A DNA stretch of 64,000 nt, from assembly GCF_052425735.1 (NCBI RefSeq), contig NC_135766.1:11532001-11596000 (forward strand), in the 5' to 3' direction. Origin of the DNA: Oculina patagonica (Eukaryota). A program made the position numbers and the translations under genes. This document shows, piece by piece, positions 5,838 through 62,426 of the stretch; position 1 is the first letter of the stretch, and every line of letters begins with the position of its first letter. The notes under the pieces are model-generated. The model was not told the origin of the DNA. It was given only the letters and a program-made list of their open reading frames with translations, and made no database searches.

Positions 5838-7515
5838 CTTCCTTTCCATCCTCCTCTGCCTTTTCCGCCCAAGAGTTAAAAATGCTCCTTTGCTGTTTTT
5901 GATAGAGCATGGCTTCTAAGAGATAATAAATCTTGATACGGTCATGATGTTCCACTGGAAGGAGAAGGTGGTCTGACTTCAAAGAAATGTTCAAGGCAAG
6001 TTCAAAGTTTGGCTTATCAAGTTCAAATCTGTTGAAAGCTGTGATGTATTCTTTGTCCAAAAGAGCTGAAATATCCTTCAGTTTGGACATGAAAAGGTTA
6101 CAAAACCTGTCTCTTGCCTTCTGGTAATCTTTCATGAAAACGGTGCTGTTACCGATGCTCCTTAAAAACTTTCGCATCAACGGATGAATGTCGTAGGAGA
6201 GGACCTTCGCCTTTGGGTCAACCGATACTACTATGCTATTTCGCAAGCCCTCCAGCTGTATAACAGCTTCCGACAAGTCCACCCCGAGGATGGTAGCGGC
6301 TGCTTCGGCAGAGAAAGGGCGGCCACATAACGACACTGAAACGGCACTCTCTTTTAGCCTTTCACTCGGCAGGAAGAAAAACATTTTTCTCAAGCAGTTC
6401 TCTTGTTCTTTGTCAATCCCTTCCTTTTTGTAATCAAATATTTCTCTCTCCTGTGTAACTTTCTCTGTCGGAGGTAATCCCGTTTCTGGGATTCCGATCA
6501 CTGCCTCTTCCTCTATGGTTTCAAGAAGCTTTTTGTCATCTGCTGTCTTCTGCCTTAAGATGGCGGCCATTCCGTTCAGGATAAGGGGATTCCCTCGGCA
6601 CATTTGTACCAACTTATCCCGACTTTGATCTTCTTCGAGGCTACGATTTCCATAGGTTTGAAGTAGTACACTTGAGACCGCTTTATCTAATGCTTTAACT
6701 TCATAATTATCGACAAGAGAATCACCGTGACGAATCGCAGTTCTCGAAGTCAACAAAATCTTCAACTTTGATTTTCCCTGAACACGTTGAAGTCTTCGGA
6801 GAAACGTCATAAAGTTGATATTCTGGTCCTTGGCAGCGTCTCCTTCTCCCCCCGCAAACTGGTCAACATTATCTAGAAGTAACAGCATGTCGCTTTCGTC
6901 GTTTTGCATCAGTTGTTGTATTTGACCGATGACTGGATTTGCTTCATAGCTTACGACCGTTCGCTCTGATTCCGTTAAAGCGTTTAGAACGTGGAAGTGA
7001 ACGCTTTTCATCTCAGTTATTCCTCTAAAGTCGACTTTAAATTTTCTGCCAGGCCACTTTGATAAAGTTTTAATGGCTAGCGTTGTCTTGCCTACCCCAC
7101 TTGATCCATACAAATTCACAACACTCGAACTGCCTGTTGTTAGCTTTGTCATAACTTTCTCTAAGTCGTGAACTCTGCCAGTTAGATCTTCTTTTGTCTT
7201 TACAGCCTTTCGCTGGCGTATTGTTTTGAAGCCTTGGATCTTTTCTTGGATGCTCTCCTTCTTGGTTGTTTTCGGAGTTGAAAACCTCTCTAACAAAGTT
7301 AGATTGTCCTCCGACACGAGACCTTGAGTGGCAAATAAATGCAAACAAGAATATAGATCTCGCTCTTGTTGATCTTCAAATTTGCCTTTAAAATTTCTTT
7401 TAATAGACGAAACGGCAACTTCGAGTTCTTCAGGGCTTAATTCACTTGAAACGTCTTTAAGAAGTTTGTCAAGATCAGGAGAAATCTCTCCTATCGCTGT
7501 TTCGAGCGACGCCAT
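5838..7515 (-). CDS. DED + NB-ARC-type STAND NTPase (NLR/APAF-like immune receptor), first coding exon; later exons not found in the window
   Basis: Starts at ATG 7515 (MASLETAIG). N-terminus is DED-like (LLKDVSSELSPEEL...GLVSEDNLTLLERF). Walker A GSSGVGKTT, Walker B LLLLDNVD, sensor ILLTSR, CRGNPLIL and an MHD-like YDIHPLMR are present. Ends at a GTAAG donor at 5837 (phase 1). Confidence 0.85.
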
Positions 7516-9824
7516 CTTCGCCAAATATATCATGATATGTGGCACCACAATGCAATAAAGTTATGCAGAAGTATAATCAGACATTGTTCATAAAATGATG
7601 AAAACATTCACGCCACCCTCGACCTACAGAGAGCTGTCTTATTTTCCGCATTTAATCTGTACTACAGCTGGTCACAAAGATAAGAAAATTTTAGCACCAA
7701 AGCCATCATCATCCACTCAATTAATTAACTGGTCATGATAAAGAGCATAACCGCGGCAATAATGTTTTGACAAGTGCGAAACACGCAACGCTCAAGGGCA
7801 TAACTGATGAAAATATCTACTAATGATAAAGATGAAATGTTTATTTGTCAAGAGCGTGCATGGGAGAAAGGAAAATATCTGAGTTCCCGATGGGAATCGA
7901 ACCCATGGTAAAAAATCTGTTGTTTTGAGACGACATTTCGGCATTATACTGACGCAAGCACAAGTACAAGCATAACAGCTCTCATTTCACCGTGAAAACG
8001 GCTTTGACGCAAGCATTAGCACAAGGATCAATTTTTTTTTCGTTTTCTTGAGCTTGTTCTTGCGTTCGTGTGAAAACAAAACACCGCATAAGCACAAGAA
8101 AATTGTTTACGTCTGACCATGTCTAGCCAATTACTGAGCACTCGCTTCAAACACCCCCGCGTCTGAGCATTTGAACAAATTAGCGGAGGCAGGACCTTCT
8201 TATTTGATGAAAAGTGCTTTGAAAAGAGTAAATAATAGAAGGTTAAAAATATTAAAATAAATCAGATGTTCATTCAGGGTAACATGGTCCTTTACATAAG
8301 TTTTGGGAAGTATTGAGTGACGATGAAACAGAAGAATTTAATCAAAATTAACGTTGTTAAATCTTATTTAAGAAGCCTGTTCATAAACGTCATACAGCGT
8401 CCGCTTGGTAAATTGTAAACTGGGAGTCATAAAACGGCTTTGTATACCAGTCAGCGAACTCTGCCTACCCTACCCTATAAGGGGTTCAGTGCAGGCGAGA
8501 GACTCCATGATAACTTGCATGCGCATGTAACCTATCCTGGATTCTTGCACTTCTTCCTTCTGGACTCAATATATATTGATATATTTATTTTCCTTTCGGA
8601 CTGCTATGTACTCCAATTCAATTACGAAAAGGAAAAAAGTTTACTGAAGATCTAAGAACACAGTAAAGAAACCTAAATATAAGATTATCCGATTGCAGCT
8701 TTTGCTATGCAACCATGACATTTTACTGTCTGAGTAATTCGAAATTCCATAACATTTCACTGGCGACGGAATCGGAGTCGTAATCGGAAGCGCAGTGTTA
8801 CGATCTAGTGAGCATCAAACAGACGGAGTCGTAAACAAAGTTCAGCTTTCGCTTATGACTTCGTCGCCTATGATCCAGTGAAAACTAGATTGTTGGAGTC
8901 GCAAGCAGAAAGGAAGCACTCGGAGGGTGTGAGAACCAGCATCATGGTTGGTTTGTTTTTCGCTCTTGTCTGCGACTCTGACAATCTAGTTTTCACTAAT
9001 ATATAAGCGACGGAGCCATAAGAGGAATCGAGAGAAAATGGAAACGTTCTGTTTCTTTAGACTCTGATCCCGTAGAGCTTATGAAGATTTATGAGTAAAA
9101 AACGTTTCGAGGGTAAGATTACATCGATGACAGACTTCACATGTCGTAATATGGAAAATTCGAGGCACTTTTTTTCGCTTGATTGACAGTTTCTTTGTTC
9201 TCACGGTGGCTCGCATGACTGCGATTTCTCGGAATTTGTGTTCAACTTCTCGGAAATCATGACTTTTTTTGCAAGTCAAAATTACATCATTATTTGTGCA
9301 CGGTCGTCCCATTTTGTTTAACTTAGCCCTGTTATCACAAAACAACAGGTGATTGCAAGGGTCTTTGGACAGCACATAAATAATTTTATTAACTATGACG
9401 ATTTTTTTTTCAAACTTCGTAAAAGGCAATGTTACATTGGTCTTTATACTGATAAATTTATGCTGACTTATTTAACCATATTCTTCGCAACCGCTTCACT
9501 CGCTTAAAAGCTACCAAATACATAAATAATTTATTTCTTCCTAATAGACGAATACTAACTTTTACAGGACCTAGTCGTCAACCGTATAATTTTAGATAAA
9601 GATAAAGCTGGTTTCCGCACTCTAGCGATCAAAAAAGGCATTTAGCGCCAATGATATATAACTGACTAGGAATCAGCTAGCATTGTACATAAGCACAAAT
9701 AAAATGTCCAGCTAATTACGTCTGCGTCGTTTATAAACACGACCATAGTCTAATTATTGGAAGCTGTCGCTGTTTTCTTAAGTTCAGACATGCTTATGCT
9801 TATGCGCTAGTTCAAAATCAGCTT

Positions 9825-11355
9825 CTATAACTCCTTGCAAAGTTCCACGATGACCGCTGAATCCAAGTAAATCTTGTCAACTCCAACATCTTCAACTTCG
9901 TTGCCAATCCAACTGCCCCCTCCTTCTTTATCGAGAACAAGTTGTTGTTCCGTATTCTGCGCCTTTCGGTAGATTTCAATGAAGGGGATACCAACGCGCC
10001 GTTGACGATAATTTTCTTGCGCCAATCTTCGCTGAGGAGCACCATAGGCCGACTTAACAGGTTTGAAAGACTGCACAGAATTAAATTCGTAAATTTTGTG
10101 AGTTTCAGCGAGTTCCCCGTCTTCGCCAAAGCCATAAGGATAGATCGCAGCAGTCTGATACCTTGACAGTATACTCTTTAACTCGCACTTCCATTGCTTA
10201 TTAACTAACAAGTCGAACAATGTTTTGTCTTCTCCTTTAAGCAAATGTGGCTGCAGACCTTTTGAGATGTACTTGTGTTTTAAAAGCAATCCAACTTTCG
10301 GCGAAGAACGTTGCCTTTGACTTTGAATCTTCTTAAGCTCGATGTCCACATTAGCAAGAGCTTTCGAGCTTAAGGAGGGACTTTCTGCACTGCATTCGAA
10401 ATGCTCGTCAAGATAAACAGTGTCTTCGGACTCACGGCTGCTAATAATATCGTGATAGCTTGGCGACCATTGTGAGGTGATAATGTTGTAAGTGATGGTA
10501 ACTCTGTGTCCTTTGAGGACAGGTTTGACTTCATGAATGCAGTCGCTGTAAAATGCGGCCCACTGAATTCTGCTCGTGTCTCCGGAGTACTGCGAAAAGT
10601 CAAAGACGTGTTGCAAGCCGTCATGGTTAACAAGCAACTCACCGCCTTTGTGAGGCGAAGGAAGACAAACGACCAGAGTTCCGATCCTATTATGCACCTA
10701 TCATTTAAGCCCGAGAGGGGGGGGGGGGGGGGGAAAGGAGTTGCGTATCATGCTGTGATCAGATGGACTGTCGACGTGGCGGTTTGGGTTCTTTTGGGTT
10801 TGGGGGGGGGAAATTTTTTTTTAAAAAAAAGGCAAAAACCCTCCTTCGCCGTAAACGTTGACTTTATAGAGAACCAGCTCTACATGCCTGCCAGGAGCAA
10901 GTTTATCCTCGATATGTGCTTTGATGGGTTCCATTCCAGGATGTCTTCTTATTCGGAGCCTCGCTGATTCAATCTCGTAGGCCAGACGAACCTCGGGATC
11001 AAGCACTGTTTTCATTTCTTTTATGTCTCCAAACGGTGCGGGATTGCAGTATTCCAGCAGTTCATCTAAAGGAAGATTTGGCAAGGTGAATGCTTCCCAG
11101 TTTATACTTTCTGCTTTTGTTGCTTCACTTCTAAAACGCAATTCTCCATATCTGATGGCCGTAAACTTCCTCTACAGCAGAACAAGGGTTTGGATAAAGC
11201 ATGCTTGAGACTATCGATAAGTGGATCGCAAATTTTGATCTCTTCTTTGAAACGATACGTTTCTTTGATATGATGACTGTTAACTACATAGCCCAATGGA
11301 CGGAGTTTTCTACTTCTTGCTCGTATTCAAGAGATCTATGGTCGGTTTCCTTTGG
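9825..11355 (-). pseudogene. 2OG-Fe(II) dioxygenase copy 1 (disrupted)
   Basis: Split over ORFs 11102-11296, 10821-11141 and 9825-10697. The start-codon segment is deleted relative to copy 2. Two homopolymer-rich insertions (about 10683-10745 and 10787-10833) flank the HxD codons. Confidence 0.85.
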
Positions 11356-11507
11356 AATTTGGAGTTGCGACAACCTCTTTGGTGGTTATTTAGAAAACGA
11401 GTTACTTCTAATTGACAGGTAGAGTCGCGTGTCTATTATCTTGACGCAAAGTAGCGTCACGCGATTCTACTAGCCAACCAGGTGTAGCTGGGAATTCTTA
11501 GAAAATA

Positions 11508-11936
11508 CAGTGCCGTAGCAAGGGGAGGGGCCGGGGGGGCCCGTGCCCTCCCCAGTTTTTTTCCCAAAAAGTAAAAAACAGACCTGTATAAAATGTTGAA
11601 AATAAAATTTTATCTCCCGAGAAGTTTGAATCAATAACATTTGTACTTCTTTTCATTTTCAATGTACGTAGGAAAATAATATAAAAGCCAAAAACTAAAA
11701 CAAATCAGAAATCGTGACAACAATGTGAAAACAATGTCTCAAAAATGTCTCAAATTTGCGATATGCGTAAATCACAAATAGCTCTTGGAGAACGCTGGAA
11801 ATAGCATTTCCAAGCCTCTAGATTTCAAAATTTTCGGGGGGAGCATGCCCCCAAACCGCCCTAGCAGCTCGCGCCTCCAGCGCTCGTGTGCCCCCCCCCC
11901 CCCCCCCCCACTTATTTTACCCTTGCTACGGCACTG
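11508..11936. mobile_element. MITE with 17-bp TIR CAGTGCCGTAGCAAGGG and 5-bp TSD (hAT5-like)
   Basis: TSD aaata at 11503-11507 and 11937-11941; empty site visible in the paralogous spacer near 15282. Confidence 0.9.
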
Positions 11937-13149
11937 AAATAGGTACATTGCTTCCGCCGGAAATAGCTACCAATTCCAAGAAAGGACGAACCTTGTTTAC
12001 GCCGGATGTACAAGGACTGAGCCAAAAACAAACAACTAACCACGAGCTTCTGTTTGCAAAATCTATAACCGTCTATGTTTCACGTTATGCGTCAGATTGC
12101 CATTGCATTTTGATTGTTGTAATCGTCATTTTTTGGATTTTAGATTTGTAAATGTATCCACAAGAGAAATAAAACAATTTACGTTTTTAATGTAAGATAG
12201 CTGCGCGTTGATATGAAGATTCGTTACGAAATCATGCTCTAAAATGATTATTTAAGGAGTTTGACTGTTTGGAGTTGTCATTTGATGGCATCTCCGTTTT
12301 TGGTCCACTTCAATCTCGGAATTTTACGTTAGCATTATGCCTGATCCATGTTTAGTACGTTACTTGTATTATCTATTAAGGCCCTTTATGTCTGTAAACA
12401 TCAGGTTTCAGATTCTCAATATACATACACTTTTTTTTTTTTTCATTTATTTTCTTTACTTTATTATTATGTATTTTTCCGTGTATTGGGATGTTCCATC
12501 TTCCTGGTTTTATTGACGGCTGAAATTTAATGCCATTTTCGTTTCATTGCTTGCATGATTAACAGTTTCTTTGTTCTCTGGTTACCTGCATGACAACAGA
12601 TGTTTCTCGGAATTTGCATTCAACTTCTCGGAAACTATAGCAGAAAATTCTTTTTGCGAGATTTTAAAATCCTGTTTGTAATCCAAACTTGCATAATTAA
12701 TAATCTACTGGTAACATAGGATTTTGTGCTACCTCTTTCCATTTATAATAATGATACTTGATAATTCTGCGCGGTCGTCCAGTTTGCAATCGCATATTAT
12801 ACAGACATAATAAGACTCCATAACAGACAACTGCGTGTTTGCACCAATTAGTCTTAAAGTAAAAATAACATCGTTTAGTATACTACTATCTACGGATCCT
12901 AGCTGTCATTGTATAATTAAAACATGGCCATGGTTTTTACGGCAAACAGTAAAAGCATATTGTTAGCAGAAAAAGATACAAGCTTAAATTAAAAGCAGTG
13001 TTGAGAGGACAACATGAAATATCGACTATTGCAATGATTTGAGCATGTTTTTCTTTGTAAATCACAACATATACATAAGCATAAGCTAAAAAATAACGAG
13101 ATTTCGTGTTGGACATACTAATTAATAATGCTATAGTAAAAATCAGCGT

Positions 13150-14622
13150 TTACAGCTCCTTGCAAAGTTCCACGATGACTGCGGAATCCAAATAAATCTT
13201 ATCTACGCCACAATCTTCAATTTCGTTGCCGACCCACGAGCCTTCTCCTTTATTATTACGCACCGGTTCAAGATGGGCATTCTCTGTCGGCTTTCTGTAA
13301 ATTTCAATAAAGGGGATACCAACGCGCCATTGACGAAATCCTCTTTGTAAGTATCCCCTTGAACGATCACCAGAGACCAACCACGGAGGCTTGGAAGACT
13401 TTGAAGTGACGTGGAATTCGTAGATTTCGTGAGTCTCTTCATAATCTAAGTCGGCATCATCCTCATAAACTAAAAGGATCGCGGCAGTCTGATACCTTGA
13501 CAGTACACTCTTTAACTCACACTTCCACTGCTGATCAACTAAGAAGTCGAACAATGTTTTGTCTTCTCCTTTAAGCAAATGTGCCTGCAGACCCTTTGAG
13601 ATGTACTTGTGTTTTAAAAGAAATCCAACCTTGAAAGGTGAACTACTCCTTTGCCTTTGAATCTTCTCAAGCTCAACGTTCACATTAGCAAGAGCTTTCG
13701 AGGCTAAAGAAGGACTTTCTACGCTGCATTCAAAATGCTCCTGCGCAGAAACAGGGTCTTCGGGCACACGGCTGCTATTAATAAGGGGATAGCTTGGTGA
13801 CCATTGTGAAGTGATAATGTTGTAAGTGATGGTAACTCTGTGTCCTTCAAGGACAGGCTTGACTTCATGAATGCAGTCGCTGTAAAATGCGGCCCACTGA
13901 ATTCTGCTCGTGTCTCCAGAGTGCTGTGAAAAGTCGAAGACGTGCTGCAAGCCGTCATGGTTAACAAGCAACTCACCGCCTTTGTGAGGTGAAGGAAGAC
14001 AAACGACCAGAGTTCCTATCATGTTGTGATCAGATGGATTGTCGACGTGCCGTTTGAAAAACCCTCCTTCGCCGTAAACGTTGACTTTATAGGGAACCAG
14101 CTCTATATACCTGCCAGGAGTAAGTTTATCCTCGATGTGTGCTTCAATCGATATTTCTCCAGGATATCTGTGTATTTTGAACCTTGCTGATTCGATTTCG
14201 TAGGCCAGACGAACCTCAGGATCAAGCACTGTTTTCATTTCTTTTATGTCGCCAAACGGTGCTGGATTGCAGTGCTTCAGCAACTCGTCCAAAGGAATAT
14301 TTGGAAAACTGAATTCTTCCCAGTGATCTTTGTCTTCTTCTGAATTTGTTGGCTTCACTTTTAATATGCACTTCTCCATATCTGATGGCCGTAAACTTCC
14401 CCCACAGCAAAACACGGGTTGGGATAAAGCATGCTCGAGACTATCGATAAGTGGATCGTAAATTTTGATCTCTTCTTTGAAACGATACGTTTTTTTGATA
14501 TGATGACTGTTGACTACATAGCCCAATGGAGGACTGTGGACCGAGTTTTCTACGGCTTGCTCGTATTCAAGGGGTCCATGGTCGGTTTCCTTTGGCCGCT
14601 GTTTAGCAAAAGCTTCAGCCAT
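13150..14622 (-). CDS. Intronless 2OG-Fe(II) dioxygenase domain protein, 490 aa (copy 2, intact)
   Basis: Single ATG-to-stop ORF. YKVNVYGEGGFFKRHVD...GTLVVCLPSPHKGGELLV...AAFYSDCIHEVKPVLEGHRVTITYNI gives the HxD...H facial triad plus the 2OG-binding Arg. Confidence 0.9.
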   Translation of the reverse strand: MAEAFAKQRPKETDHGPLEYEQAVENSVHSPPLGYVVNSHHIKKTYRFKEEIKIYDPLIDSLEHALSQPVFCCGGSLRPSDMEKCILKVKPTNSEEDKDHWEEFSFPNIPLDELLKHCNPAPFGDIKEMKTVLDPEVRLAYEIESARFKIHRYPGEISIEAHIEDKLTPGRYIELVPYKVNVYGEGGFFKRHVDNPSDHNMIGTLVVCLPSPHKGGELLVNHDGLQHVFDFSQHSGDTSRIQWAAFYSDCIHEVKPVLEGHRVTITYNIITSQWSPSYPLINSSRVPEDPVSAQEHFECSVESPSLASKALANVNVELEKIQRQRSSSPFKVGFLLKHKYISKGLQAHLLKGEDKTLFDFLVDQQWKCELKSVLSRYQTAAILLVYEDDADLDYEETHEIYEFHVTSKSSKPPWLVSGDRSRGYLQRGFRQWRVGIPFIEIYRKPTENAHLEPVRNNKGEGSWVGNEIEDCGVDKIYLDSAVIVELCKEL

Positions 14623-14681
14623 TTTCGAATTTGAGTTTGCAACAACTAAACCTCTTTGTTAATGGTTTACAAAAGGGGTTA

Positions 14682-16078: not shown

Positions 16079-17839
16079 TACGGTGTACGATGAGTATCAT
16101 GCGTTAAAATCTTGAAAAGGTACATGAAATCTTGAAAAAATACATAAAATCTTGAAAAGTGACATGAAATCTTGAAAAACACGAAAAAATCTTGAAAACA
16201 AAGTGAAAAATCTTGAAAAACGCGAAAAAATCTTGTAAAACGCGAAAAAATCTTGAAAACGCGAAAAAATCTTGAAAAACGCGAAAAAATCTTGAAAACG
16301 CGAAAAAAATCTTGAAAAACGCTAAAAAATCTTGAAAAACGCAAAAAATCTTGACAATGCGAAAACAATCTTGAAAAACGCGAAAAAATCTTGAAAAACG
16401 GTAAAAAGTCTTGAAAAACGCAAAAAAATCTTGGAAAACGCGAAAAAAATCTTGAAAACGCGAAAAAGCTTGAAGATTAATAAAGGTGAAATGAGATATT
16501 GATCTCACGTGAGACAACGTGCTTGCATGTTGAATACATGTCTGTTAGGCCAAACACTACTCCCTTTGAGCTGTTTCGGTAAAAGTATTGGTTGAGATTT
16601 GCGTTTTGGAACTCAACTAACTGCCTCCATTTTTTTATTCGTTTTGTCTCGTTACTTGCATCCAACAAATAAATTTTATTACAGTTTGATTACTGGATTT
16701 GAAGTCTCCAGGATGCGGTAACGATGATCTCTTCTGGCAATTTTTTTATTCTTAAGCAAGACTCGAGTTTCGGTTCTTCAGTGGAACTCATCAGTTGCTC
16801 CTAAAGTCTCGTCCAATTATTTGAAATCATTCGATTTGCCGTTTTTGTACAAATCTCAACACCCAAGCTAAGGGGAGCTTGAAAAACTGAAATAACTCAC
16901 AATGCTTTGAGACTGCATTACCCTTGAAAGGACTCGGATCTTAGATCTTCGCATCCGTTGAAAAGACACAATCCTGCGAGCTGACCGCACGCTTATGATA
17001 AACAAAATCATTGTTCGAGATAGTCTGCAGAACAGGCGGTTTTTATATTTTTCATTCGCGCTTCGCGCTCGCCCTCGCGTGACCCGCTAAATAATAACCT
17101 AGCACTTCGCGCCTCGACCCGCAAAATAAACCGCCTGTTCTGCAGGCTATGTTCGAGAGGTCTACTGATCCGATACACGTTCCAGACAGTGAGACAACAA
17201 TATTCTTTTAAAGGACTGATAAACGACTTTTAGCTTAACATGCCACAGAACAAGCAAACAAAATGGCATTAATATTTTTACTGAAACAGCTCTAGAGATC
17301 TAGAGAACGTAAAATCCATAATTAAACAGACTGAAGGTTAACTTTAAGCGGCCAACGGGAGTCGTGTTTGGCCTAACAGACATGTATTCAACAAGCACGT
17401 CGTGTCACGTGAGATCAAGATCTCATTTGACCTTTTCATGATAATTTTCAAGCTTCCAGCGTTTATATCAAGATTTTCGCGTGATTTTCAAGATTGTTTG
17501 GCGTTTTTCAAGTTTTCTCGCGTTTTTCAAGATTTTTTCGCGTTTTTCAAGATTTTTTTACGTTTTCAAGATTTTTTCGCGTTTTCAAGATTTTTCGTGT
17601 TTTTCAAGATTTTTCGCGTTTTCAAGATTTTTTTCGCGTTTTCAAGATTTTTTCGCGTTTTTCAAGATTTTTTCGCGTTTTTCAAGATTCTTCACTTTGT
17701 TTTCAAGATTTTTTCGTGTTTTTCAAGATTTCATGTCACTTTTCAAGATTTTATGTATTTTTTCAAGATTTCATGTAACTTTTCAAGATTTTATGTATTT
17801 TTTCAAGATTTTAACGCATGATACTCATCGTACACCGTA
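16079..17839. mobile_element. Foldback-type non-autonomous transposon: ~490-bp TIRs containing ~20-bp tandem minisatellite arrays, 6-bp TSD
   Basis: Termini tacggtgtacgatgagtatcatgcg / cgcatgatactcatcgtacaccgta; (aaaatcttgaaaaacgcgaa)n on the left arm and its complement on the right; TSD cattca at 16073-16078 and 17840-17845; empty site near 12735. Confidence 0.9.
17021..17149. mobile_element. Palindromic MITE, TAG...CTA termini, 9-bp TSD (Academ-like), nested in the foldback element
   Basis: tagtctgcagaacaggcgg / ccgcctgttctgcaggcta; TSD tgttcgaga at 17012-17020 and 17150-17158. Confidence 0.85.
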
Positions 17840-18256: not shown

Positions 18257-19586
18257 TTACAGCTCCTTGCAAAGTTCCACGATGACTGCGGAATCCAAAT
18301 AAATCTTGTCTACGCCACAATCTTCAATTTGGTTGCCGACCCACGAGCCTTCTCCTTTATAATCACGCACTGGTTCAAGTTGGACATTCTCTGTCGGCTT
18401 TCTGTAAATTTCAATAAAGGGGATACCAACGCGCCATTGACGAAAACCATGGTGTATCCATCCCCTCGAACGATCACCAGAGACCAACCAAGGAGGCTTG
18501 GAAGACTTTGAACTGACGTTGAATTCATAGATTTCGTGAGTCTCCTCATAATCCAAGTCCTCTCCCAAAAGGATCGCGGCAGTCTGATACCTTGTCAGTA
18601 CACTCTTTAACTCACATTTCCACTGCTTATCAACTAAGAAGTCGAACAATGTTTTGTCTTCTCCTTTAAGTAAATGTGGCTGGAGACCCTTTGAGATGTA
18701 CTTGTGTTTTAAAAGAAATCCAACCTTGAAAGGTGAACTTCTCCTTTGCCTTTGAATCTTCTCAAGCTCGACGTTCACATTAGCAAGAGCTTTCGAGGCT
18801 AAAGAGGGACTTTCTACGCTGCATTCAAAATGCTCCTGCACAGAAACAGGGTCTTCGGGCACACGGCTGCTATTAATAAGGGGATAGCATGGTGAGCATT
18901 GTGAAGTGATAATGTTGTAAGTGATGGTAACTCTGTGTCCTTCAAGGACAGGCTTGACTTCGTGAATGCAGTCGCTGTAAAATGCAGCCCACTGAATTCT
19001 GCTCGTGTCGTCAGAGTGCTGTGAAAAGTCGAAGACGTGTTGCAAGCCGTCATGATTAACGAGCAACTCACCGCCTTTGTGGGATGAAGGAAGGCAAACC
19101 AGTGGCGGATCGATATCCAAACCTTGAACTAAGGAGGGCCCCTTTTTGCCTGTGTACACTCAATACATTTTTGGCGGGGGAGTCACTAACAAAACTCTTT
19201 TACCAAAAATAAGGAGGGGGCCCGGGTCCCCCGAGCCCCGCCCTTAGGTCCGCCACTGCAAACGGCCAGAGTTCCTAACACGTGTTGCAAGCCGTCATGG
19301 TTAACGAGCAACTCACCGCCTTTGTGGGATGAAGGAAGGCAAACCAGTGGCGGATCGATATCCAAACCTTGAACTAAGGAGGGCCCCTTTTTGCCTGTGT
19401 ACACTCAATACATTTTTGGCGGGGGAGTCACTAACAAAACTCTTTTACCAAAAATAAGGAGGGGGCCCGGGTCCCCCGAGCCCCGCCCTTAGGTCCGCCA
19501 CTGCAAACGACCAGAGTTCCTATCATGTCGTGATCAGATGGATTGTCCACGTGCGGTTTGAAAAATCCTCCTTCGCCGTAAACGTT
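18257..19586 (-). pseudogene. 2OG-Fe(II) dioxygenase copy 3 (5'-truncated, MITE-disrupted, internal duplication)
   Basis: The 3' part is nearly identical to copy 2. A MITE sits in the LVVC codons, 19035-19277 is duplicated at 19280-19522, and homology stops near 19586. Confidence 0.88.
19100..19258. mobile_element. 159-bp MITE with CAGTGGCGGA termini and 5-bp TSD (hAT5-like); second copy at 19345-19503 arose by tandem duplication
   Basis: TSD caaac on both sides; empty site in copies 1 and 2. Confidence 0.88.
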
Positions 19587-51436: not shown

Positions 51437-54400
51437 TCACCGATGGTGATATCGAGACCAAAAGCTCTTTATTTGGCTCTCCTTTAACTTGTTTTGTTCC
51501 CCGAGTTTCCGTACCATTTCTTCTTGGCACATTGCAGCCGTATAACGCTTGTTTCTGTCATCGACACCCTTCATATAGCATTCAATCATGATTTGTTTCT
51601 GTTGTTCACTGAAGCGCTTGTTTGTTCTGGCAGGGCGGTTACATTTGTCTGCCTTTCCAGGGATTGCATAGAGCCAGGCCTTCTCGTCTTTGCTGAGTTC
51701 ACATGTTGAACTGACCGGTTGTGGCTGTGTGCTTTTTATTTCAGCAACTATATCTGTGACTAGATTATTGTTTGTATTTGTTTTAGGTGTAGCTTTTCCA
51801 CAAGAACCTTGGTGTTTTTGCAGATTTCCTTTGCGCAGGAAAGACTTGCCACAGTCTATACAAGTGTTACCTCCACGATCAGGTACATTAGTGATGATGC
51901 TTGTTGGCCTAGAACTGCCAGTGTCTTCCTTTTTTTTAGCAGTCGTAGTTTGCCTCTGTGGCAAATCTTTAACAGTAATTGCCTTTTCAAGTGAAAAGTT
52001 ACTGGTTGCTCCTGTGCTTTCGCATTCTAAATGCCCCCAGAGCTTTCTAAGTTTCAAACATTCGTATGTTTTTGTTTCAGACAGCCTTGTTTGATTTCGT
52101 GCAGTAATCTGTTTCAGCTTGTTGTCATTGCCATAAATATACTCAAAATCTGAATATTCTGTGATCCCATTCATTGTCTTTGCTGATTCTGGTTCCTTTA
52201 ACCTATCAATGTTGACACCATAGACATGTGTTCCCCTTAGCCGTCCATTCGTTCCTTTTTCAATTTGTTCCCCTGAGACCACATCGTTCCCTTCTCTTCT
52301 GTATCGTTTCAGAGAAAACTTTAACGTGGCATAGTGCCCATCCAGCTTCGTCTTCCCTTTCTGGGGCTCAAAATTTCGAAAACTAGAGACGTATACTCCT
52401 GTATGCAAAAATATATTTGGCAACCACAGCACAAGTGATGTGTTTTTATAATGTGCCCCATTGTCGGTCCACAAAATTATGTTAGTGATTTCGGGGTGAA
52501 GTTTTTTAAAATTCCTTATGGACTCTTCTAAACAAGTGGCTGAAAAATACCAATTCTGTTTGTCATCTGATTCACTGTATATGTCGTGGAATTCTGTAAA
52601 TACTTCTCCGGAGTCTTCTCTTTTGAAAAAGAACATTGAACCGTATAGCGATACCCCCTTTTTTGCAAACCAATCTTTCTGAGGTTCAAATAGTTTTTGG
52701 AAAAGAAGTTTCATCATATAGTCAGCAACCATAACTGCTTCGCCTGGGACCAGCTTGTTTATGTCTATTAAAAACTGCTCCCTCTGATACTTGCCTCTGA
52801 TAATATGCCCTATGTAACTGTTTAAGTTTTTTTCTATTTGGGTAATTTGGTCCACCACGTTTGGGTCATTAACTGTGTTGCAAATTTCTTTCAGATCCCT
52901 TATTATGTGAAAGATTTGTAGGCAGCTGTGGCACGTTTCTTGGTGGTCCATGATGCTACCACATGGCGGATTGTCAGACAGCCAAAGGCTAGCGCAGTGG
53001 GTTGCACAGTTGCTGTGGGTTCTCAAATTAGCTTGAAATTCGGACAGCAGGTAACCTTTCAATGTCTTAGCTCTAGTTATTAAGGCTGGAGTTGTATCCG
53101 GTTTCTGATTGCTCCGCAAAGTTTCTCCCAGTTGGGTTAACAGTTGGCCCAGTTGAATGAAATTCTCAGCCCCAAGCTCCGTGCAAATGTTACATAGGCC
53201 TGCTTTTTCTGCCATGATTTTAAAATTACCTGCAGAAATGCCCTTAAAAAATGTGCTGAAACTGATGGCTTTGATCTTTAACTGTTGCCATTCTTGTTTG
53301 TAACGATCGTATAATGCAGATTTGTTTTGTTTCAACCACAGGACAGGTTGATTTCCACCTCCTAACAATTCACTAACCCATGACTTTTGTTTCCCTTCAC
53401 AGGAGGCAGTTTTGTACGACGAGTATTCCACACTGTCAGGATGGTGAATAAATTCCAGCACAAAAGCTATGGTTTCTGGTGGAAGTTTCTGACAAGGTCT
53501 CCGATTCACTTTAGGCACTGAAGCTCCTGGACCGCACACCTTGCTATGAAGTCTAGCTTTTGTTATCTCGTAGTCAGTGCAAAATACCTCTTCTCCTCGA
53601 CTGTTTGTATATTTAAAAATCTCCTTAAGTTCCTTATTTGTATACTGTTGTGCAACACAGCTTAAAAGTTCAACTCGTTTGGGGCTTCCAGGCTTCTCTC
53701 TGGAATAACTGAGTGCTAATCCTTCCACAATGTTAGCATTTCCATGCTTCTTTTTATCCTGCATAAAATGTTGAATTATTTTTAAGTTTCAAGGAGATAC
53801 TACAAGTAAAATGCTTCCATGTACTTTTCAAGTTCGAAAGCTCTACCAGTCTAAATCATAATCTTGGTTTTCACTGCCATGACAAGAAACAATAAAATGG
53901 AATCCACTGAACGAAAAAAGTCGAATTTGAAATGAAACAGAAAATTAATAATGATAATTGAACTGCGTGGAATGCAATTTGGACAACACGAAGTTCAATT
54001 ACCACTTTATTACAACCTTTTTGAAATCGCACAATTTAATCTCGCAAATACAGGATTTTAGTCAGTATAAAATGCTAAATATTGATCCAGTAACAGGTTT
54101 TTAAAATTGTTCCTTTCTCATTGGCTGCAGTAGAGATGCAATTTAGAGCACAAAGTGGTGCAAATAATTATTTGTGAATAAATCGCACTGCTGAGATCCA
54201 ATCAGATTGCAAGGATCACCAGTGATTTCAAAATGGATGTAATAAAATTTAATATAGAAATAACTTGTCTAAGTCTCAAGTCTGTGCGGTATTCCATTCT
54301 TGACTTATTTGTTGTCAGCAAGCTGTTTTGTCTCTTGTTTTGCAAGATATCTATTAGCGGAGTGTTCCAATGCAAAATGAACATTTTACAGGGGCTTTAA

Positions 54401-55349: not shown

Positions 55350-58300
55350 AGTACAATCTCAGCACGATTTTGAACTGAATTGACGGAAGTTAATAAATTC
55401 TTGACAAACAAGTGCTGTGATAAATGAAACTAGCTATAACAAAACAAAAAGCCTAAAACTCTCAAATACTAGACTACTAAAACTGACTCGAGGTGAAAAC
55501 ACCACTCAGGAAATATTTAGCCAGGGAGCTCACTCGCCATTGGCGGTTTTCAGTGAGTCCCTGAAGATAATAATAAATTACAAAAAATAATACCCAATTT
55601 ACAATCCTAGTTATAAGACCTCGATAAAATATTTTTATAAAACCCACTCAAAAGTCCCAAATTATTCAAAAAAAGGTTACAATTGCAATAGAAAAATTAT
55701 AAGGAACAAACTTCACTAATTTTAGAATTACTTGACAAAACAAGTACTCAAAAAAATCTACTGGTGTAAATTTGCAGAAACTAAGATTAGAACCTGTAAT
55801 AAAACAGCAAGCCTGACACAAAAATTCTCAAATAAGACCCGACAAAACTACACTCGAGAAACTAATAAACAAACAATTACGTGACAAAACGCACTCTTAA
55901 ATAATCTACTCGGGTGTAAATTTCCAAACTATGGAACTGGCCAAAAACAACCAGCCAAGAAAAATCCAATGAATACAAAAATTAGAAAGCAAATACTTGG
56001 CTACTAAAAACAGAACCCAACAAAAACGCTACTCGGGAATTAAACGGCAAAATTCACAACAAATAGAAAGCGGAAAAATTGCCAATAAATTTCGAACAAA
56101 TACAATTCCAAAAAATTACCGTATGAAACTGACACTTGCAAATAACTTTGAATGAAAACAAACGAGCTGAGATTGTAACTATCAACAGCTTTGCCTTTTG
56201 CGAAGTTGCAAAAAAAGTTTCCGTTCTCAGGTAGCCGGCCGGCGCCGGCTAAGGCGGGAAAATGGTTGGCAGCCGGCGTGTCTTTCCCGCCATACAAGCA
56301 AGCCAAAGCTACATGAATTTTACAGTGCTCAACTTCGAATATAAGATCAAAGACAAGACAAAGAATATATGTAAACAACTGTTCATTATTTAATTGTAAA
56401 ACAACAAACATTCCTAGCTTACAATAAACATTTGTAAACGTCATTATTTCTGGAAATCCAATCTCAAAATCCGATCTAAACGAACGATTAAAAATCTGCC
56501 GACAGACACAATTTCCTTCGCCTACAGGCCATACTGCTTAGAACCGAAAATACGGTACAAATACACTGGACTCACCGCTTCTAAAGCTTCGTCGAAGCTT
56601 CCCAGATCTTCCTCCCGACGTAACCGAGTAAAACTTCGAATAAAATCGTTCATAACTCGCCCACTTTCAACAAAAACATCACAAAACCGCTCTCCCTTCT
56701 CATCGAACAACATGGACGCGCGTTCTGATCGAAAGTGAAATGCGCGCGCAAGTTCTTATGGGATTTTTGACCGCTGGCCTCTTGCATTGCTCGAAGTTCA
56801 AAAAAATCTCGTCTTAATATCAATTAATTAATTATTCCTTGTGGAGGGGGTGGGGGTGGGGAGCACCTGACCGTACCCCTAGGTAAAACCTGGAGCACAT
56901 CTACGTTACTTTCATATGAAGATCTCAAACGTATATATTTGTTTCAGAAAACCCTTTGCTCTCCTTGTGGTACTACTCAACGTAATTTACACCAAACGCA
57001 TGCGCAGATTAGTCTACGTTGTTTTCTGGAACTATCATGAACATCGCTTGTATTGCGTGTCTGCGGTAGGCTTCCTGCAGACTTCTTGGCGCCAAGTAAA
57101 AACCGCAAATTAATTAAATTAGATTTGGAGACTTTCACAGCGCTTTCGTAATTAGGTATGCAAAAACTTGCACCGGGATTTTCGGCGTGAACACCTGATA
57201 ACCAGGAAACAAATATCCTAGCTGTACTGCGTTTTAAAAAACCTGTCGAAAAATATGTTTTTTGATTAGATTTGTTTCTTTAGGTTTTGAGAATCGTCTT
57301 TCGTGCAGTCTAAACCGTAACTTAATTAAATTAAACAAATGTCATCGATGCCGCCGTAAAACAAACAAAAAACAAAAGTTTCATGTTATCGCATTTTCAA
57401 GGAAGACAAAAGTATTTTGTTACAAACGAACAAAAGTGTCGTGTTATGTTTGCAAAGATTAGCGTAAGGAACACCTGGGAAAGAATACTAGTAGCCTGTG
57501 AACAGTTTTTCCGAACGTAAAGTAAAGCAAATAAACACGAACATATATAAAACATCATACTTTCAATTGTTCCATATTGCATTCTGCACTTACCAAATCA
57601 TCGAGATTTTCTTTTCTTCTTTCCTCACTATTACGGACACCTTTGGGACCACGATTTGGTGTCCGCAATAGAAAAGTCCGCAGTAGCGGGAGTTATTTTC
57701 AGTAATTCTCATTCGCTGGGACTTAAACTCCTGTCCGTAATAACGGGGTGTCCGCAAGGCGGGAGTTGACTGTAGTCGGAAAGCTGGGTTCTTATATTCA
57801 TCTCACGCTGGCATGTTTCTTCTCCCGCCTGGGTACAACTACTACATAGGGCGAGGAAAGGAAAGATAGGAGGCGTAAGTCACTTTATAGAGGCTTTATT
57901 TCCAACATGTACTACAGATCAGCGGCGAGAGCTTACGAACGAGAATAAAGAACTGATTCTCATCGCGAATCGATACTAGTGTGTTGCCTCAAAAACAAAC
58001 TATGAAATAGTTAAAATATTTACATTTGTTATAAATAGATACATGTATATATAAAGAGAGAAATAATACATAAGCTATATACAATATACGTACAATAAAA
58101 TTTGTACAAGAGAAACTTTTACTTCTTTAAGAAGATAACCTAAAATGTAAATTAATGTTAATTCTTATGGCTTTGCCTAAAATAAAAACACATTGTTCCC
58201 TTAAACTCGTTCACGTATTTCTTTTGGTAGTTGACTTGAAAATGTGATAATACAGCGGGTTGTAAAATTGCGGCTTCCTTCACTTTTAACTACATATTTT

Positions 58301-58755
58301 GGGCGGAACTAAGTTACGCTGACAACTGTGGATTCAGTGAGGGGAATGTCAGCGCTTATAGTTGAACATTTATTTACATGCATGAACTACAAAAATTGGG
58401 ACAGACACCGGATTTTTAAGTGGTTATAAATGTCAATAATGGATCGGAGGATTTACAGATCCGATCCTTAATGACGATTCACGTTTTTAACACATGAACA
58501 GTTCGAGCAAAACGGTGTGATTATAAAATCACTCTTCCTGCCACTAAACACTGACGGCCAGGTTTCTTTTGAAGTGCAAGACAAAACCGCGAGAAAAGGC
58601 CATACAGCATGTTTTACTTGCTTTATCATAAGACCGTCTGAGTGAGTATACGTATAAAAAGACGATCAATTACAATCTACCATTACTAACTTTTAGCTCA
58701 TTTTCCTATTTACCTAAATAAGCCAGTTTACAAGAAAGATCTGTGAAAGATGGAC

Positions 58756-61700
58756 TTAACAGTTATGGTCCACCAAACAAAACTTTTCCGCAAGATCTTT
58801 ACGATCCACTAAAGGATGACACAAGGCGTCATGTAAAACTTGGAAAGTTGCACCTGTTGCACCTTTAGCTTGTTTCCATTTCAATAACATTTTAAATGCC
58901 TTTTCACAGCATTCCTCATTATCTTTATGAATTGCATCTAGCGCTGCTTCATCGTTTTCCAATAACCGACGCCCAAACACTTTCCATTCCTTGACGACTT
59001 CCTTTGCCAGTCTTTCCAGGTCATCATTTTCAGGTGTGCCTCCTTTAACTGAAACCAAAAGAACACAATTAAAGTCCTACGTTATAAAATTTGAGTTGAC
59101 ATGATTTGCTAAGGAGGTCAAGGAGTGAGGGATAGCAAAAGGTTTTTTTTGTGAGCGTAATTGAATATCTCTTGGCGTGAACTGGCATACGTGAAATGAT
59201 TGGGGTTTTTTATGCACTCGCGAAACGTCATCTGTTAAATTGGCTTTGAGTAGTGGTTTACCGTAATTATTATTTTACGTCGAAAAAAAAATTACTTAAG
59301 TAAATTTATCTGGTCGAATGACTGAGAACAATCACGATGCCACTGCCCAGGAGTATTGCAGGGTCGTTCAGTTCACCAGGTAAGACTACCAATGAGCAGT
59401 CGCGTTTTGGACAATGCACGTGCAGTGCATACAATTAACCTTTTGCCAGGCGCACCGTGTTGCATGTGGAACATGAGTGAAGAATGCTTGGGTTTAGACG
59501 TTTTCTTCATATCATCCCATGAGACGTAATATTTAGTTAACTGGAAATACACGTAATCTCTGTTGAGCTTGTTAAATAAATCTCTGCCGCAGCAGCCATT
59601 TTAACAAGGGAAAATTATACTGGGGACATCACGTTTACCTGGGGTGGTGTAACCACGGATACTGCTACTGCTACTATTACTATTTTTGTTGTTGTTTATA
59701 TTACCTGCACGGTGCGCAGACGTGTGTTTGGAACGTTTTGTGCAGGTACATGATGGCGATTCTCTCTTTCGTTTTACAGAAGAACCTCAAAAGGAAAACA
59801 GGAGTTAATATAAGAGACAACTGAAATTCTCAGTTTTTATAGAAAAACATGAAACTTGAGGTGATTTGAGGAGCAAGAGTGATTAGTTTCACTCGTGCTG
59901 TCAGCGTCCGTTGGCGTGCTAGCGTTGGTAATACCTCAGGCTATTTAGCTTGTGGGCAGGGTCTAAACGGTTTCCTTTTGCGACTTATGCGTACGTCATC
60001 GCACGTGCTTTCTGCGTGCTCTGTCTTTCTTTACAGCATTCCCCTTCCCTCCCCTCTCTGAGGCAGCGTTCTCTCCCCGGTTCCGGGGATTATAGGTTTT
60101 ATTTTACTGTGTTTATATATTTTTTGACATTGTGATTGTTAGCACACTCACTAGTATTTCCACTGATCCTTGCAAGCCTACGGGGATGATGGCCGGGTAA
60201 AGGTTGAGGGCAGACCAATGGGGTGTTACATGTATGTTCTACTACGCTGGGCTGGTTTTGCAATCGTAGCCACTAAGCTTAAAATTCATGTCCAGTGCAG
60301 AAAACTGTACCAACGTGTATTTAATAAAATCACCAAAGTTGGGCGATTTCTCTATCAAAAATGTTGGCTCTACATCTTGGATTCAGATTATTTTAAATCA
60401 ATGACAAAATTTACCTTGATTATGTGTAGTCTGCGCACTGATTTCGTTTGACGATTTGGTACTTGAGCCTGAAGGTAATTGCTTTTGCTTTGCAGTAGAA
60501 TGTGTACAGTTGTTAGAAGTTCCTAAAAGAATTGGAAAACAATATTAGGACAAAGCTGACATCATTAGACAGAAGAACATGATGCGGTAAAGAAAATAAA
60601 CAGCCCGTTAAGCTGACTTGTGGAATAGAGTTCTTTGAATTTCAATTTTCCGAGGTCATTTAAAATTTGACTCAGACTAATGACTTATTGACTTGTTTAA
60701 CTCATAAAAACTTTATTACTTAGCTTAGCACTATAAGGAGGGGGCTTTGCGTCTTTTCATTTTCCAAAGTTTTGCCTTCAAGAGTGTCCTTAAGCCTCAT
60801 TAAACTTACTAGTGGAATAAACATTTTTTAGAGCCTTCAAGTCCACGTAGAGTTTTTCCTCCTCAGGGCGGGATTGTTGTAGTAAGCCCCACTGAAAAAG
60901 CATTGACTACTTGGCCTGGAAAATGAATTGAATCCATGTTGGACTAAACAGTGCACGTTTCTTGGACTTAAAACACATTTGTACCATGTTCTCGTCTAAA
61001 ATTAAACCAGCAGCGTTAACAGCAATTTTCACAGATTCAGTTGATGTATAACATGCTGCAATTAAGATGATCACATGTTATGTACATGTTAATAGCCAGC
61101 TCACATGGGGGTGGAACGTTTACTTAATGCAAACGAGGGTACATGTAATTGTGTTCCTGTTCACTGCAGCATATTAGTTAAAAATCCACAAAATATGAAA
61201 AAAATCATACCACAAACCACAGTGAACATTTCTTTAATCAGATCCTCACAAGGTTTCTCCCAGCTGTACTTTTCATCATAATGCGAGCGCAGTAGTGCAG
61301 CCTGCTCGAGCCTTGTCTTTCTGTCTGTTTCTCGCACCTTCTTGATTGCCTTGGCCCACACCTTGGCATCATCAGAATCCACAGTGGATTTCCATGATGT
61401 ACCAGTCTCGACCTCTCTTAGAGCTTCACCACACTCTGAATCTTCGTGCACCAGGATAGGCAGACCAGCAGATAAGGCTGCAAGAGCCATTCCAAATCCC
61501 TGTTTACTTGAGGGCATGATGGCAAGGTCTGCTTTACAGAACAAGCGTTTCAAGTCTTCTACACATCTTGGAAAGCTTTGAATGGTTAATTGACGTTGTG
61601 CAACACCACAGTGATAGAATTTTTCAGCAAACTGCACTTGTTTTGCTTTTGACACACAAACAAACAGAAGGACATATGATTTGTCTTTCAACTCTGCCAC

Positions 61701-62426
61701 TGCATTAGCAGCAGTGTGAAGTCCCTCTTCGTAGAAATTCTCAGGGTCAAAACCACCACTTATCAACACACGAAACTTTCTTCTGTCAGCAATAGCATGG
61801 CTTACATCAGAAAGGTCACTGAGTATACCTGGAGGAAGTTCAAACACTTTCTTCCTGTAGAAACGGAGAGACGCAGAAAGTTCATCAGCCATCTTGGGTC
61901 CGATGGCAACTGGAATATCAGCCATTCGACTAAGTTGGACAGTAGTCATTATTTGAGAACTGCTGTTAGTGATGCTGGCCAATTTCTCAAGGCAGTGTTG
62001 GCCTTCAAAGAGCATCTCTTCCAGCGGGTTAGAAGCAACAAAAACACTCTTGCAATGGTGACGTTCCTTGAACAATTGTGCAATTTTTCCAAGCCTCTCA
62101 CCTACACCAACTACAATGTCAGTCGTAAGGTCTTGTGGTGGGAAGATCAACCAATCAACAGGGTCATCAAAACCTGGCTGTTCCTTTGCTTCAACAATGG
62201 TAATACCATAACTGGCAGCTTCTCTCTTGTCCTTTTCACTACACGAATCTTCTTCTGGAACAAACAAAGTGACTCTCATCCAAGGGATTTTTGCCAATTT
62301 AATGGCAAAGTCAATGGCAAAAGTTGATTGGGATGACGAGTAGGGAACAGCAACGTGCAGTGGACCGCTGGAGGAAAAACTTCCACTTTTGTCTACTGTA
62401 CATTTTGAGCTGTTATCAGAGCAACA
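58756..62426 (-). CDS. GT4-fold + DEATH-domain fusion protein, paralog B; exons 62426-61211, 60468-60415 and 59048-58756, first exon not located
   Basis: The GT exon is homologous to 27650-28892 with the same intron phases. A 54-nt phase-1/phase-1 linker exon (GSSTKSSNEISAQTTHNQ) follows. The terminal exon LERLAKEVVKEWKVFGRRLL...AFKMLLKWKQ...ATFQVLHDALCHPLVDRKDLAE is a DEATH fold. Confidence 0.82.

Follow-up and report, generated by a model that had tools for sequence, protein, structure and literature searches.

The 64,000-bp stretch of the Oculina patagonica genome (529 Mb) analysed here, scaffold C9:11,532,001-11,596,000 and hereafter the window, is probably a slice of a lineage-expanded innate-immunity-type cluster of at least 260 kb, in which independent genes have been multiplied by repeated tandem and segmental duplication. 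Four host units were identified in the window, namely a STAND exon encoding DED-like and NB-ARC domains, an array of 2-oxoglutarate (2OG) oxygenase copies, and two genes with glycosyltransferase family 4 (GT4) domains, GT4a and GT4b-DEATH; the remainder is transposon sequence (Table 1). A first-pass annotation had presented these genes as a candidate coral immune island that may act as a co-regulated module. A cluster of immune-type genes in a coral is real as a description. Domain identities, gene models, a duplication map, transposon content and partial synteny were observed directly, and the functions considered below are those suggested by the domain families. In the model that we favour, the DED-like/NB-ARC/TPR STAND genes, the GT4-exon genes, a ZU5-Death gene and a 2OG gene of the prolyl hydroxylase (PHD) type would each be an independent unit of the cluster. 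The oxygenase, a putative protein hydroxylase, would have been copied along with its neighbours, its extra copies would decay, and its presence would mainly reflect inherited linkage or hitchhiking.

The duplication map covers the window and 200 kb of its flanks, with signed coordinates (- or +) continuing the window numbering outwards. In this map, the segment from -36.3k to +14.6k matches +87k to +131k, with 97-99% identity in the left part and 86-92% identity in the STAND-oxygenase part (5815-14625 against +123.9k to +131.1k). The order GT4, STAND-TPR, STAND-TPR, oxygenase is present twice, and both the STAND and the oxygenase of the duplicate block contain stop codons. The homology stops at about 14625, and GT4a therefore lies outside the duplicated unit. 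Approximately 10 STAND paralogues were detected, nearly all of them at C9:11.51-11.84 Mb, together with at least 113 GT4 candidates and at least 109 Death exons genome-wide; nine GT4 exons fall within the mapped 264 kb.

Recent tandem and segmental duplicates of TPR, STAND and GT genes are mixed here with transposons, the composition of a cluster of the non-syntenic region (nSR) type. In Acropora, such regions hold tandemly duplicated TPR, NACHT, CHAT and glycosyl transferase group 1 genes along with transposons, with enrichment for TPR, NACHT, glycosyl transferase group 1 and Sola-3; they grow by recurrent tandem duplication via non-allelic homologous recombination (NAHR), co-amplifying unrelated neighbours by hitchhiking (PMC12314368). 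The Oculina cluster shares with the Acropora regions the GT group 1/GT4, STAND NTPase and TPR families, the dense transposons, the recent tandem or segmental duplication, the co-amplification of an unrelated enzyme gene and the pseudogenised copies. A Sola-type transposase may be a further likeness, although the Oculina counterpart at 51437-53764 is so classed (Sola3) only in the first-pass annotation. Two differences were noted: the Oculina passenger is a PHD-type 2OG oxygenase and not a P450, sulfotransferase or carboxylesterase, and its linkage to the cluster is older than one species. GT4 expansion, together with GT4-STAND and GT4-ROCO fusions, has already been catalogued (PMC8195603). This kind of cluster is already described in corals, and the window is a further member. 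Two observations weigh against a reading in terms of independent genes. A candidate GT4 fusion of a sister STAND gene argues that the GT4 and STAND families cooperate in some form. Furthermore, the oxygenase is no chance passenger of a recent Oculina duplication: it adjoins genes of the cluster families in two other coral assemblies, a linkage that is inherited and could be selected.

As had been claimed, every host gene lies on the minus strand: this applies to all four units, and the long plus-strand open reading frames (ORFs) belong only to transposons. The placement of four units from three families on one strand has a chance probability of about 0.25 and is not significant alone. The same-strand run reaches from about -70 kb to +153 kb, which reflects the origin of the units as duplicates of one another. 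The interval originally delimited as the island ends at exact exon edges, the STAND donor at 5838 and the GT4b acceptor at 62426. Non-coding pieces had also been described as shared between the upstream regions of the genes. Sharing was indeed observed between 8335-9757 and 46264-47009, in the form of three pieces of about 150 bp each with 72-74% identity (self-blastn), but the copy at 46.3-47.0 kb lies within no gene's promoter. It lies upstream of GT4a exon 1, at a distance of 13 kb that includes an 8.3-kb transposon, and downstream of the GT4b poly(A) site, at 11 kb. In the segmental duplicate the shared piece is present again, with 94% identity; elsewhere only dispersed palindromic matches of about 50 bp were found. 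Co-orientation and shared non-coding DNA are most likely by-products of direct-repeat duplication and not signs of co-regulation.

The STAND exon matched the Pfam families NB-ARC (48.9 bits, cut-off 23.5) and NACHT (34 bits, cut-off 26.7), with a Walker A motif (GSSGVGKT) at residue 137 and a Walker B-like motif (LLLLDN) at residue 211. Its 3' edge is a consensus donor (AAG/GTAAGA). By homology to a Desmophyllum model (P0284), the exon is predicted to join in frame, through phase-compatible consensus donor and acceptor sites, to a TPR sensor exon of about 447 aa at -4359 to -5657, outside the window. The TPR exon reaches a conserved stop, hence no GT4 is attached. The distance between the two exons is about 1 kb in every paralogue versus 10.2 kb in the window copy, whose intron has been swollen by transposon debris.

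The N-terminal domain of the STAND protein was assigned more cautiously. Against Pfam DED (PF01335) it scored 16.9-19.8 bits, below the gathering cut-off of 35.9, and a few relatives bear PF01335 in precomputed annotation. Across the family, DED matches were obtained in 22 of 25 members (best E 4.6e-7), and Death, CARD or PYD matches in none. In an AlphaFold (AF2) model with a mean confidence (pLDDT) of 67, the top ~37 Foldseek matches were all DEDs, including PEA-15, caspase-8, cFLIP and FADD; the best E was only 0.067, with TM-scores of up to 0.79 by target and root-mean-square deviations of 2.3-2.9 A against solved DEDs. The RxDL motif is a feature of classical DEDs; it was not found in the STAND domain, where the corresponding stretch reads LLERFSTPKT. 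The domain is thus best called DED-like, its DED character being supported at the level of family and fold only. The earlier claim that two genes carry death-fold domains holds in full for the Death domain of GT4b-DEATH, which is above its cut-off and spliced, and for the STAND gene at that family and fold level, the window copy itself remaining under the Pfam cut-off. As suggested by its domain families, the STAND protein would be an Apaf-1/NLR-like sensor or switch that oligomerises upon NTP binding and signals via homotypic DED contacts.

Both GT4 genes of the window belong to Pfam GT4-conflict (PF20706; 158.9 bits for GT4a and 151.1 bits for GT4b, cut-off 26); GT4 glycosyltransferases are retaining enzymes with a GT-B fold. 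An alignment of 24 GT4 sequences revealed that the two glutamates of the catalytic and sugar-binding E-x7-E motif are both replaced in GT4a (EQGFGMMALAAL) and GT4b (KQGFGM-ALAAL), as well as in an exon at +67k, whereas the neighbouring GT4 exons keep them (SEGFGLIALEAL). The loss of both glutamates is common to a well-conserved GT4 subfamily that comprises GT4a, GT4b and the +67k exon and includes sequences of other corals. GT4a and GT4b are therefore probably maintained, non-catalytic GT4-fold proteins rather than decaying genes, as judged from this conservation. Intermediate states of the motif were also observed, at -36k, where Gln stands in place of the second Glu (TEGFGLIALQAL), and at +87k, in the front GT4 of a ROCO gene (TGEFGLTALAAL); the loss therefore occurred more than once in the cluster. 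The RefSeq model of GT4a (P0130, LOC144665715) maps onto the gene at 98% identity; the departure from 100% hints at a different haplotype or individual. A sequence-only PDB search with GT4b returned no matches.

All GT4 exons start directly after a conserved LLQ, the translated ...TTGCAG acceptor. The GT4 domain is a modular internal exon whose partners vary: none in GT4a, a Death domain in GT4b, and Roc-COR. Cnidarian NLR/Apaf-1-like STANDs combine death-fold N-termini with TPR, LRR or WD40 sensors, and GT4 shows lineage-specific expansion with variable fusions (PMC8195603, PMC8260672). The cluster resembles this repertoire in its DED-like, NB-ARC and TPR combination, in its GT4 of the "conflict" type (PF20706), in huge copy number, and in the combination of GT4 with STAND, ROCO and Death-like domains. 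It differs in that GT4b of the window is joined to Death through a short Ser/Lys-rich linker, without an NTPase, and in that GT4a, GT4b and the +67k exon form a conserved subfamily without the E-x7-E glutamates.

The modularity of these exons raises a further explanation, according to which the window STAND-TPR protein, lacking a GT4 of its own, uses GT4a and GT4b-DEATH in trans as non-catalytic ligand-binding subunits, in the manner of a Rosetta stone. We consider this very unlikely. Adjacency, strand and a strong acceptor fit a candidate sister gene of the DED-NB-ARC-TPR-GT4 type at +103.5 to +111 kb; the window TPR exon ends at its conserved stop with no GT4, and the GT4 exons share the LLQ/CAG acceptor. 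However, E-x7-E is intact in the sister GT4, whose identity to GT4a and GT4b is no more than about 41%; the latter two belong to a separate, old, glutamate-less subfamily, and no docking domain is common to the proteins. Moreover, the fusion is only partly verified: the direct TPR-to-GT4 junction in the sister gene is out of phase, and an intermediate exon or another donor must therefore exist.

The structure of GT4b-DEATH was examined by comparing contigs of four runs from three studies with positions 57000-62600. None of the runs is recorded as RNA, and their RNA origin was inferred from the spliced joints and the poly(A) tail. Two intron-skipping joints were seen in all four runs, and one 449-nt contig runs on into the Death exon. 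A loose end in poly(T) marks the poly(A) site at about 57880, and another loose end coincides with the start of the GT4b exon. On the minus strand, each of the three introns is bounded by GT and AG, and the exons 62426-61211, 60522-60415, 59785-59705 and 59048-58759 give an open frame of 565 aa. In the last exon, this frame is followed by a stop at 58756-58758 and the 3' untranslated region (3'UTR). The Death domain was recognised in ORF 58759-59076 (PF00531, 36.6 bits, cut-off 22.6). The order of the protein is GT4, short Ser/Lys-rich linker and Death, with no NTPase, TRADD-N or repeats in between. A well-formed candidate 5' exon was identified at +65877-66127; it fits the loose end with three mismatches and is phase-compatible with the donor of the next upstream GT4 exon, at +67k. 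The gene may thus be a GT4-GT4-DEATH gene that extends beyond the window, with a second glutamate-less GT4 in front. GT4b-DEATH would be a non-catalytic GT-fold binder joining assemblies of Death domains and not of DEDs.

Several further features were observed around this transcript. In contigs of runs X1 and X2, which come from one study, a back-joint leads from 62428 to 61326 ("goes back 1103"). It was rejected as a circular RNA, since 61326 shows no canonical splice signal; a paralogue chimera, a tandem-GT4 transcript or a back-splice are possible origins. At 57000-57934, immediately beyond the poly(A) site, contig depth exceeds that of the neighbouring GT4b-DEATH 3'UTR by a factor of 20-100 in each of the four runs, and this piece resembles a highly expressed or multi-copy repeat; 56814-57610 is 93.5% identical to +132433 to +133210 in the duplicate block. 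The nearest paralogue of the GT4b Death exon lies 128 kb away at -69805 to -69494 (L003-L004, which also cover -71605 to -70594; 93% identity in amino acids and 85% in 3'UTR nucleotides). No GT4 exon is detectable upstream of this paralogue, and it seems that a different gene acquired the Death exon and its UTR as one copied module. A 3-kb tandem duplication with 99% identity adjoins the paralogue.

An array of 2OG oxygenases had been claimed for the window. Three copies are indeed present, and one of the three is intact (copy B); within the cluster, intact copies number one in five. Copy A corresponds to ACROYT_G030860 in GenBank, where it was modelled with an "intron" that spans its breaks, and this model (P0042) maps at 97-100% identity on 9828-11141. 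The N-terminal part of copy C consists of fragments only, with a 252-bp tandem duplication at 19032-19528. The truncation of copy C may go back to a rearrangement mediated by two inverted minisatellite arrays that lie between copies B and C. Copy B matched Pfam 2OG-FeII_Oxy_3 (PF13640) with 44.4 bits (cut-off 27) and carries a conserved C-terminal domain of unknown function. The iron triad and the 2OG-binding arginine (H192, D194, H252 and R262) are invariant in 24 homologues, and on this evidence copy B looks catalytically competent.

Sequence-only PDB searches with the oxygenase and an oxygenase profile returned no matches, and only the fold search succeeded. With the AF2 model of copy B (pLDDT 74.7), the best Foldseek match was the P. 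putida PPHD (4iw3, E 5.6e-8), followed by human PHD2, a Dictyostelium structure (6t8m) and a Trichoplax PHD. About 180 columns were aligned with these prolyl hydroxylases at 18-23% identity, and no likeness of the fold to the JBP/TET or AlkB types was found by Foldseek. According to the predicted fold, the oxygenase is a PHD-type, prolyl-hydroxylase-like enzyme. Homologues were identified in many corals, sea stars, Physarum, an oomycete, a charophyte and many fungi. The candidate origin as a microbial-type, horizontally acquired gene is not supported given this spread.

Linkage of the oxygenase in other species was assessed at eight foreign loci, each with 10-kb flanks, comprising six coral loci of at least 67% identity, a more distant coral (L028, 59%) and the sea star Patiria (L029). 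At L024, on an 824-kb contig, a Death ORF, the oxygenase, STAND and TPR lie on one strand in this order, and the oxygenase-STAND spacing is 2 kb, as in the window. The oxygenase of this locus has an in-frame stop, and its STAND is an orthologue of the other Oculina subfamily, with 69-76% identity to the +151k and +173k genes and 39% to the window STAND. On a 25-kb contig (L023/L025), the order is STAND, TPR, ZU5..Death and oxygenase. At the P0013 locus, two oxygenases occur with a Death ORF 3.4 kb off. In total, two to three of the six coral loci show linkage of the oxygenase to STAND and/or Death genes. Linkage to the cluster families within 10 kb is absent at L001, L002, the P0010 locus, L028 and L029, where the neighbours are Polinton-like genes only (L001), a MULE transposase (L002), retrotransposon ORFs (P0010), BTB-BACK-PHR genes (L028) and an HMG-box gene (L029). 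No GT4 was found within 10 kb of the oxygenase at any of these eight foreign loci; the 824-kb contig does contain a GT4 of the glutamate-less subfamily, but some 240 kb separate it from the STAND genes.

Synteny of the four gene types in other corals was therefore only partial. The linkage of oxygenase with STAND or Death genes stood in two to three assemblies, so that linkage is not lacking outside Oculina, and that with GT4 did not. With about 10 family STAND genes in 529 Mb, the chance of adjacency was estimated at about 4e-4 per locus; STAND-oxygenase adjacency is far beyond chance, and the linkage is therefore inherited. Judged from these sequence comparisons, the oxygenase is an old resident of the death-fold/STAND cluster in one coral group, predating the split of several lineages. 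Which gene it adjoins and where exactly it sits vary between species, decayed copies are frequent, and in more distant species the link is gone.

This linkage leaves room for a narrower functional idea, namely that the PHD-type hydroxylase pairs with the linked ZU5-Death and/or DED-NB-ARC-TPR genes without involvement of GT4; O2-dependent proline hydroxylation, for example, could tune cell-death or immune signalling. The oxygenase stands 2.0-2.3 kb upstream of a same-strand STAND in Oculina (twice, via duplication) and at L024, directly after the ZU5..Death gene at L023/L025, and after the Death ORF at L024; moreover, its catalytic residues are intact and its fold is nearest to protein prolyl hydroxylases and not to nucleic-acid oxygenases. 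We nevertheless regard such a pair as unlikely. It is not seen at the five unlinked loci described above, the partner STAND varies by species between the 39% class and the main class, and the position varies as well: a STAND-TPR-ZU5..Death unit of Oculina at +155.9 to +168.6 kb is not followed by an oxygenase. In addition, the cluster oxygenase copies are often pseudogenes, no oxygenase-STAND or oxygenase-Death fusion occurs among the best 120 homologues, and a distant oxygenase array at C7:27.6-28.2 Mb has no STAND, Death or scored GT4 matches nearby among the genome-wide matches listed.

A more elaborate version would make these genes a cassette of one lineage, in which the hydroxylase is tied to the ZU5-Death and DED-NB-ARC-TPR genes in a Skp1-like hydroxylation/glycosylation switch of innate immunity. 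O2/2OG-dependent hydroxylation of a cluster protein would gate the assembly of an apoptosome-like complex, the active GT4 of the sister STAND might glycosylate next, and the glutamate-less GT4-DEATH might read the modification. We hold this to be highly improbable.

Other neighbours of the oxygenase were also recorded. At L021 (+170350 to +171950), between the ZU5-Death gene and the 39%-class STAND gene, a 1.6-kb self-inverted repeat (79%) occupies exactly the oxygenase site of two other corals and may be a scar left when Oculina lost or relocated the oxygenase. Among the foreign oxygenases, the closest (78% identity, L001:1-9196) lies 0.8 kb from a Polinton/Maverick-like run with a Pox_A32 packaging ATPase, an rve integrase and a 1417-aa ORF, and it could be cargo of a giant transposon or a mere neighbour. 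In three Physarum matches (P0052, P0053 and P0078), the oxygenase family is fused to BTB-type domains (PF02214, PF16017), and L028 (4221-17216) contains a tandem pair of oxygenases with BTB-BACK-PHR genes on both sides. Skp1 is a BTB/POZ-fold protein and the substrate of a PHD-type hydroxylase. By analogy, the recurrent BTB association, which is independent of STAND and GT4, may point to real partners of the oxygenase.

The full module proposed at first, in which GT4-DEATH and/or pseudo-GT4a act as sensor or adaptor, couple by death folds to the DED-STAND and are co-regulated with an oxygenase that produces or removes the modified ligand, is extremely unlikely in the light of these results. 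In its favour, the parts all occur side by side on one strand, a genuine spliced transcript exists for GT4b-DEATH, and GT4 domains have been proposed as effectors or sensors of STAND systems (PMC8195603). Nevertheless, the coupling it requires was not supported. Assemblies of DD, DED, CARD and PYD are homotypic. The STAND DED and the GT4b Death domain show no similarity (BLASTP E about 1) and are assigned by Pfam to different classes. Likewise, the principle of effector-associated domains (EADs) in bacterial and metazoan conflict systems is that an NTPase and a neighbouring effector bear the same adaptor and make homotypic contact (Kaur et al. 2020/2021, PMC8195603). The window resembles such systems in that a helical adaptor is borne both by the STAND NTPase, at its N-terminus, and by a GT4 "effector-type" protein nearby. 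It departs from them in that the adaptors are DED-like on one side and Death on the other, so that the defining homotypic pair is absent. The only partners of the same class near GT4b are the Death domain of the ZU5 gene (32% identity) and the Death exon at -69.8 kb (93%). Further points against the module are the position of GT4a outside the duplicated unit, the absence of the "shared upstream pieces" from promoters, and the decay of both STAND and oxygenase in the duplicate block.

The enzymatic step of the module, hydroxylation followed by glycosylation, fared no better. Pathways of this kind are represented by PhyA/Gnt1 acting on Skp1 in Dictyostelium and by JBP/JGT for base J. The window is like the Skp1 pathway in the PHD/prolyl-hydroxylase type of its oxygenase fold, with Dictyostelium 6t8m among the structural matches, and in the GT-fold genes nearby. 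It is unlike both pathways in that GT4a and GT4b have lost the catalytic glutamates and therefore probably cannot follow the hydroxylase as glycosyltransferases, and in the lack of GT4-oxygenase linkage at the eight foreign loci; the oxygenase fold is, furthermore, not JBP/TET-like. Duplication of independent genes thus remains the explanation that we prefer for the window.

Table 1. Features of the window (positions in window numbering)
Feature	Position	Strand	Description
STAND intron, window part	1-5837	-	Filled with transposon debris
Inverted repeat in STAND intron	2031-2291 / 3268-3538		Self-blastn
Reverse-transcriptase fragment in STAND intron	3743-4195		Pfam RVT_1
STAND exon 1 (DED-like/NB-ARC)	5838-7515	-	559 codons, conserved start MASLET
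2OG copy A	9828-11361	-	Pseudogene in 3 frames; 66-85% identical to copy B
2OG copy B	13150-14622	-	Sole intact copy; 490 aa, single exon
Inverted minisatellite arrays	16079-16568 and 17353-17839		~84% identical; between copies B and C (self-blastn)
2OG copy C	18260-19589	-	Truncated pseudogene; C-terminal 285 aa 90.5% identical to copy B
Assembly gap	22700-22839		In intergenic, non-coding, repeat-like DNA (transposon sequence)
LINE-like ORF fragment	23002-24087	-	5'-truncated; at least 187 candidates genome-wide, many 98-99% identical, nested 5'-truncation pattern
GT4a	25722-32841	-	Coding exons 32737-32841, 27650-28892 (GT4 domain) and ~25722-25741; RefSeq LOC144665715-like, 455 aa
DNA transposon, 8.3 kb	33738-42065	+	924-bp terminal inverted repeats 98% identical; three plus-strand ORFs
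Old copy of intergenic DNA	46264-47009		72-74% identity; counterpart 8335-9757, between oxygenase array and STAND
Transposase ORF, recently active DNA transposon	51437-53764	-	775 aa; at least 316 candidates; 100% identical copies on C4 and C11
GT4b-DEATH, window part	57880-62426	-	Exons 61211-62426 (GT4), 60415-60522, 59705-59785 and 57880-59048 (Death)

The remaining sequence of the window contains several transposons. The ORFs at 23002-24087, 51437-53764 and 36331-40132 were considered as host genes and rejected, all being high-copy transposon ORFs; the LINE-like fragment is of the long interspersed nuclear element type. The 8.3-kb DNA transposon, whose ORFs are those at 36331-40132, lies about 0.9 kb upstream of GT4a exon 1 and has at least 221 genome copies. 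Its 924-bp terminal inverted repeats are unusually long, and its three ORFs resemble fragments of a single transposase (about 1000 aa) that would belong to the superfamily of the ORF at 51437-53764. The assembly gap is situated about 165 bp 3' of the stop of the LINE-like ORF. The features that flank it, about 3 kb off on each side, are the remnant of 2OG copy C and the terminal mini-exon of GT4a, and no host reading frame crosses the gap.

Corals depend on very large, fast-changing intracellular immune-type gene families, and how such families grow, and which neighbours truly cooperate, is a question for research on coral disease and symbiosis. In Oculina patagonica, a facultatively symbiotic and invasive coral, a suggestive "island" appears to be mostly the product of block duplication. 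The analysis also yielded corrected gene models, including a STAND gene with a transposon-filled 10-kb intron before its TPR exon and a transcribed GT4-DEATH fusion, and it revealed a whole GT4 subfamily without the catalytic motif. The element most worth attention is the prolyl-hydroxylase-like oxygenase retained beside death-fold genes in several corals. If this link is functional, it would tie oxygen sensing to cell-death signalling in corals; if it is not, it would be a clean example of hitchhiking.

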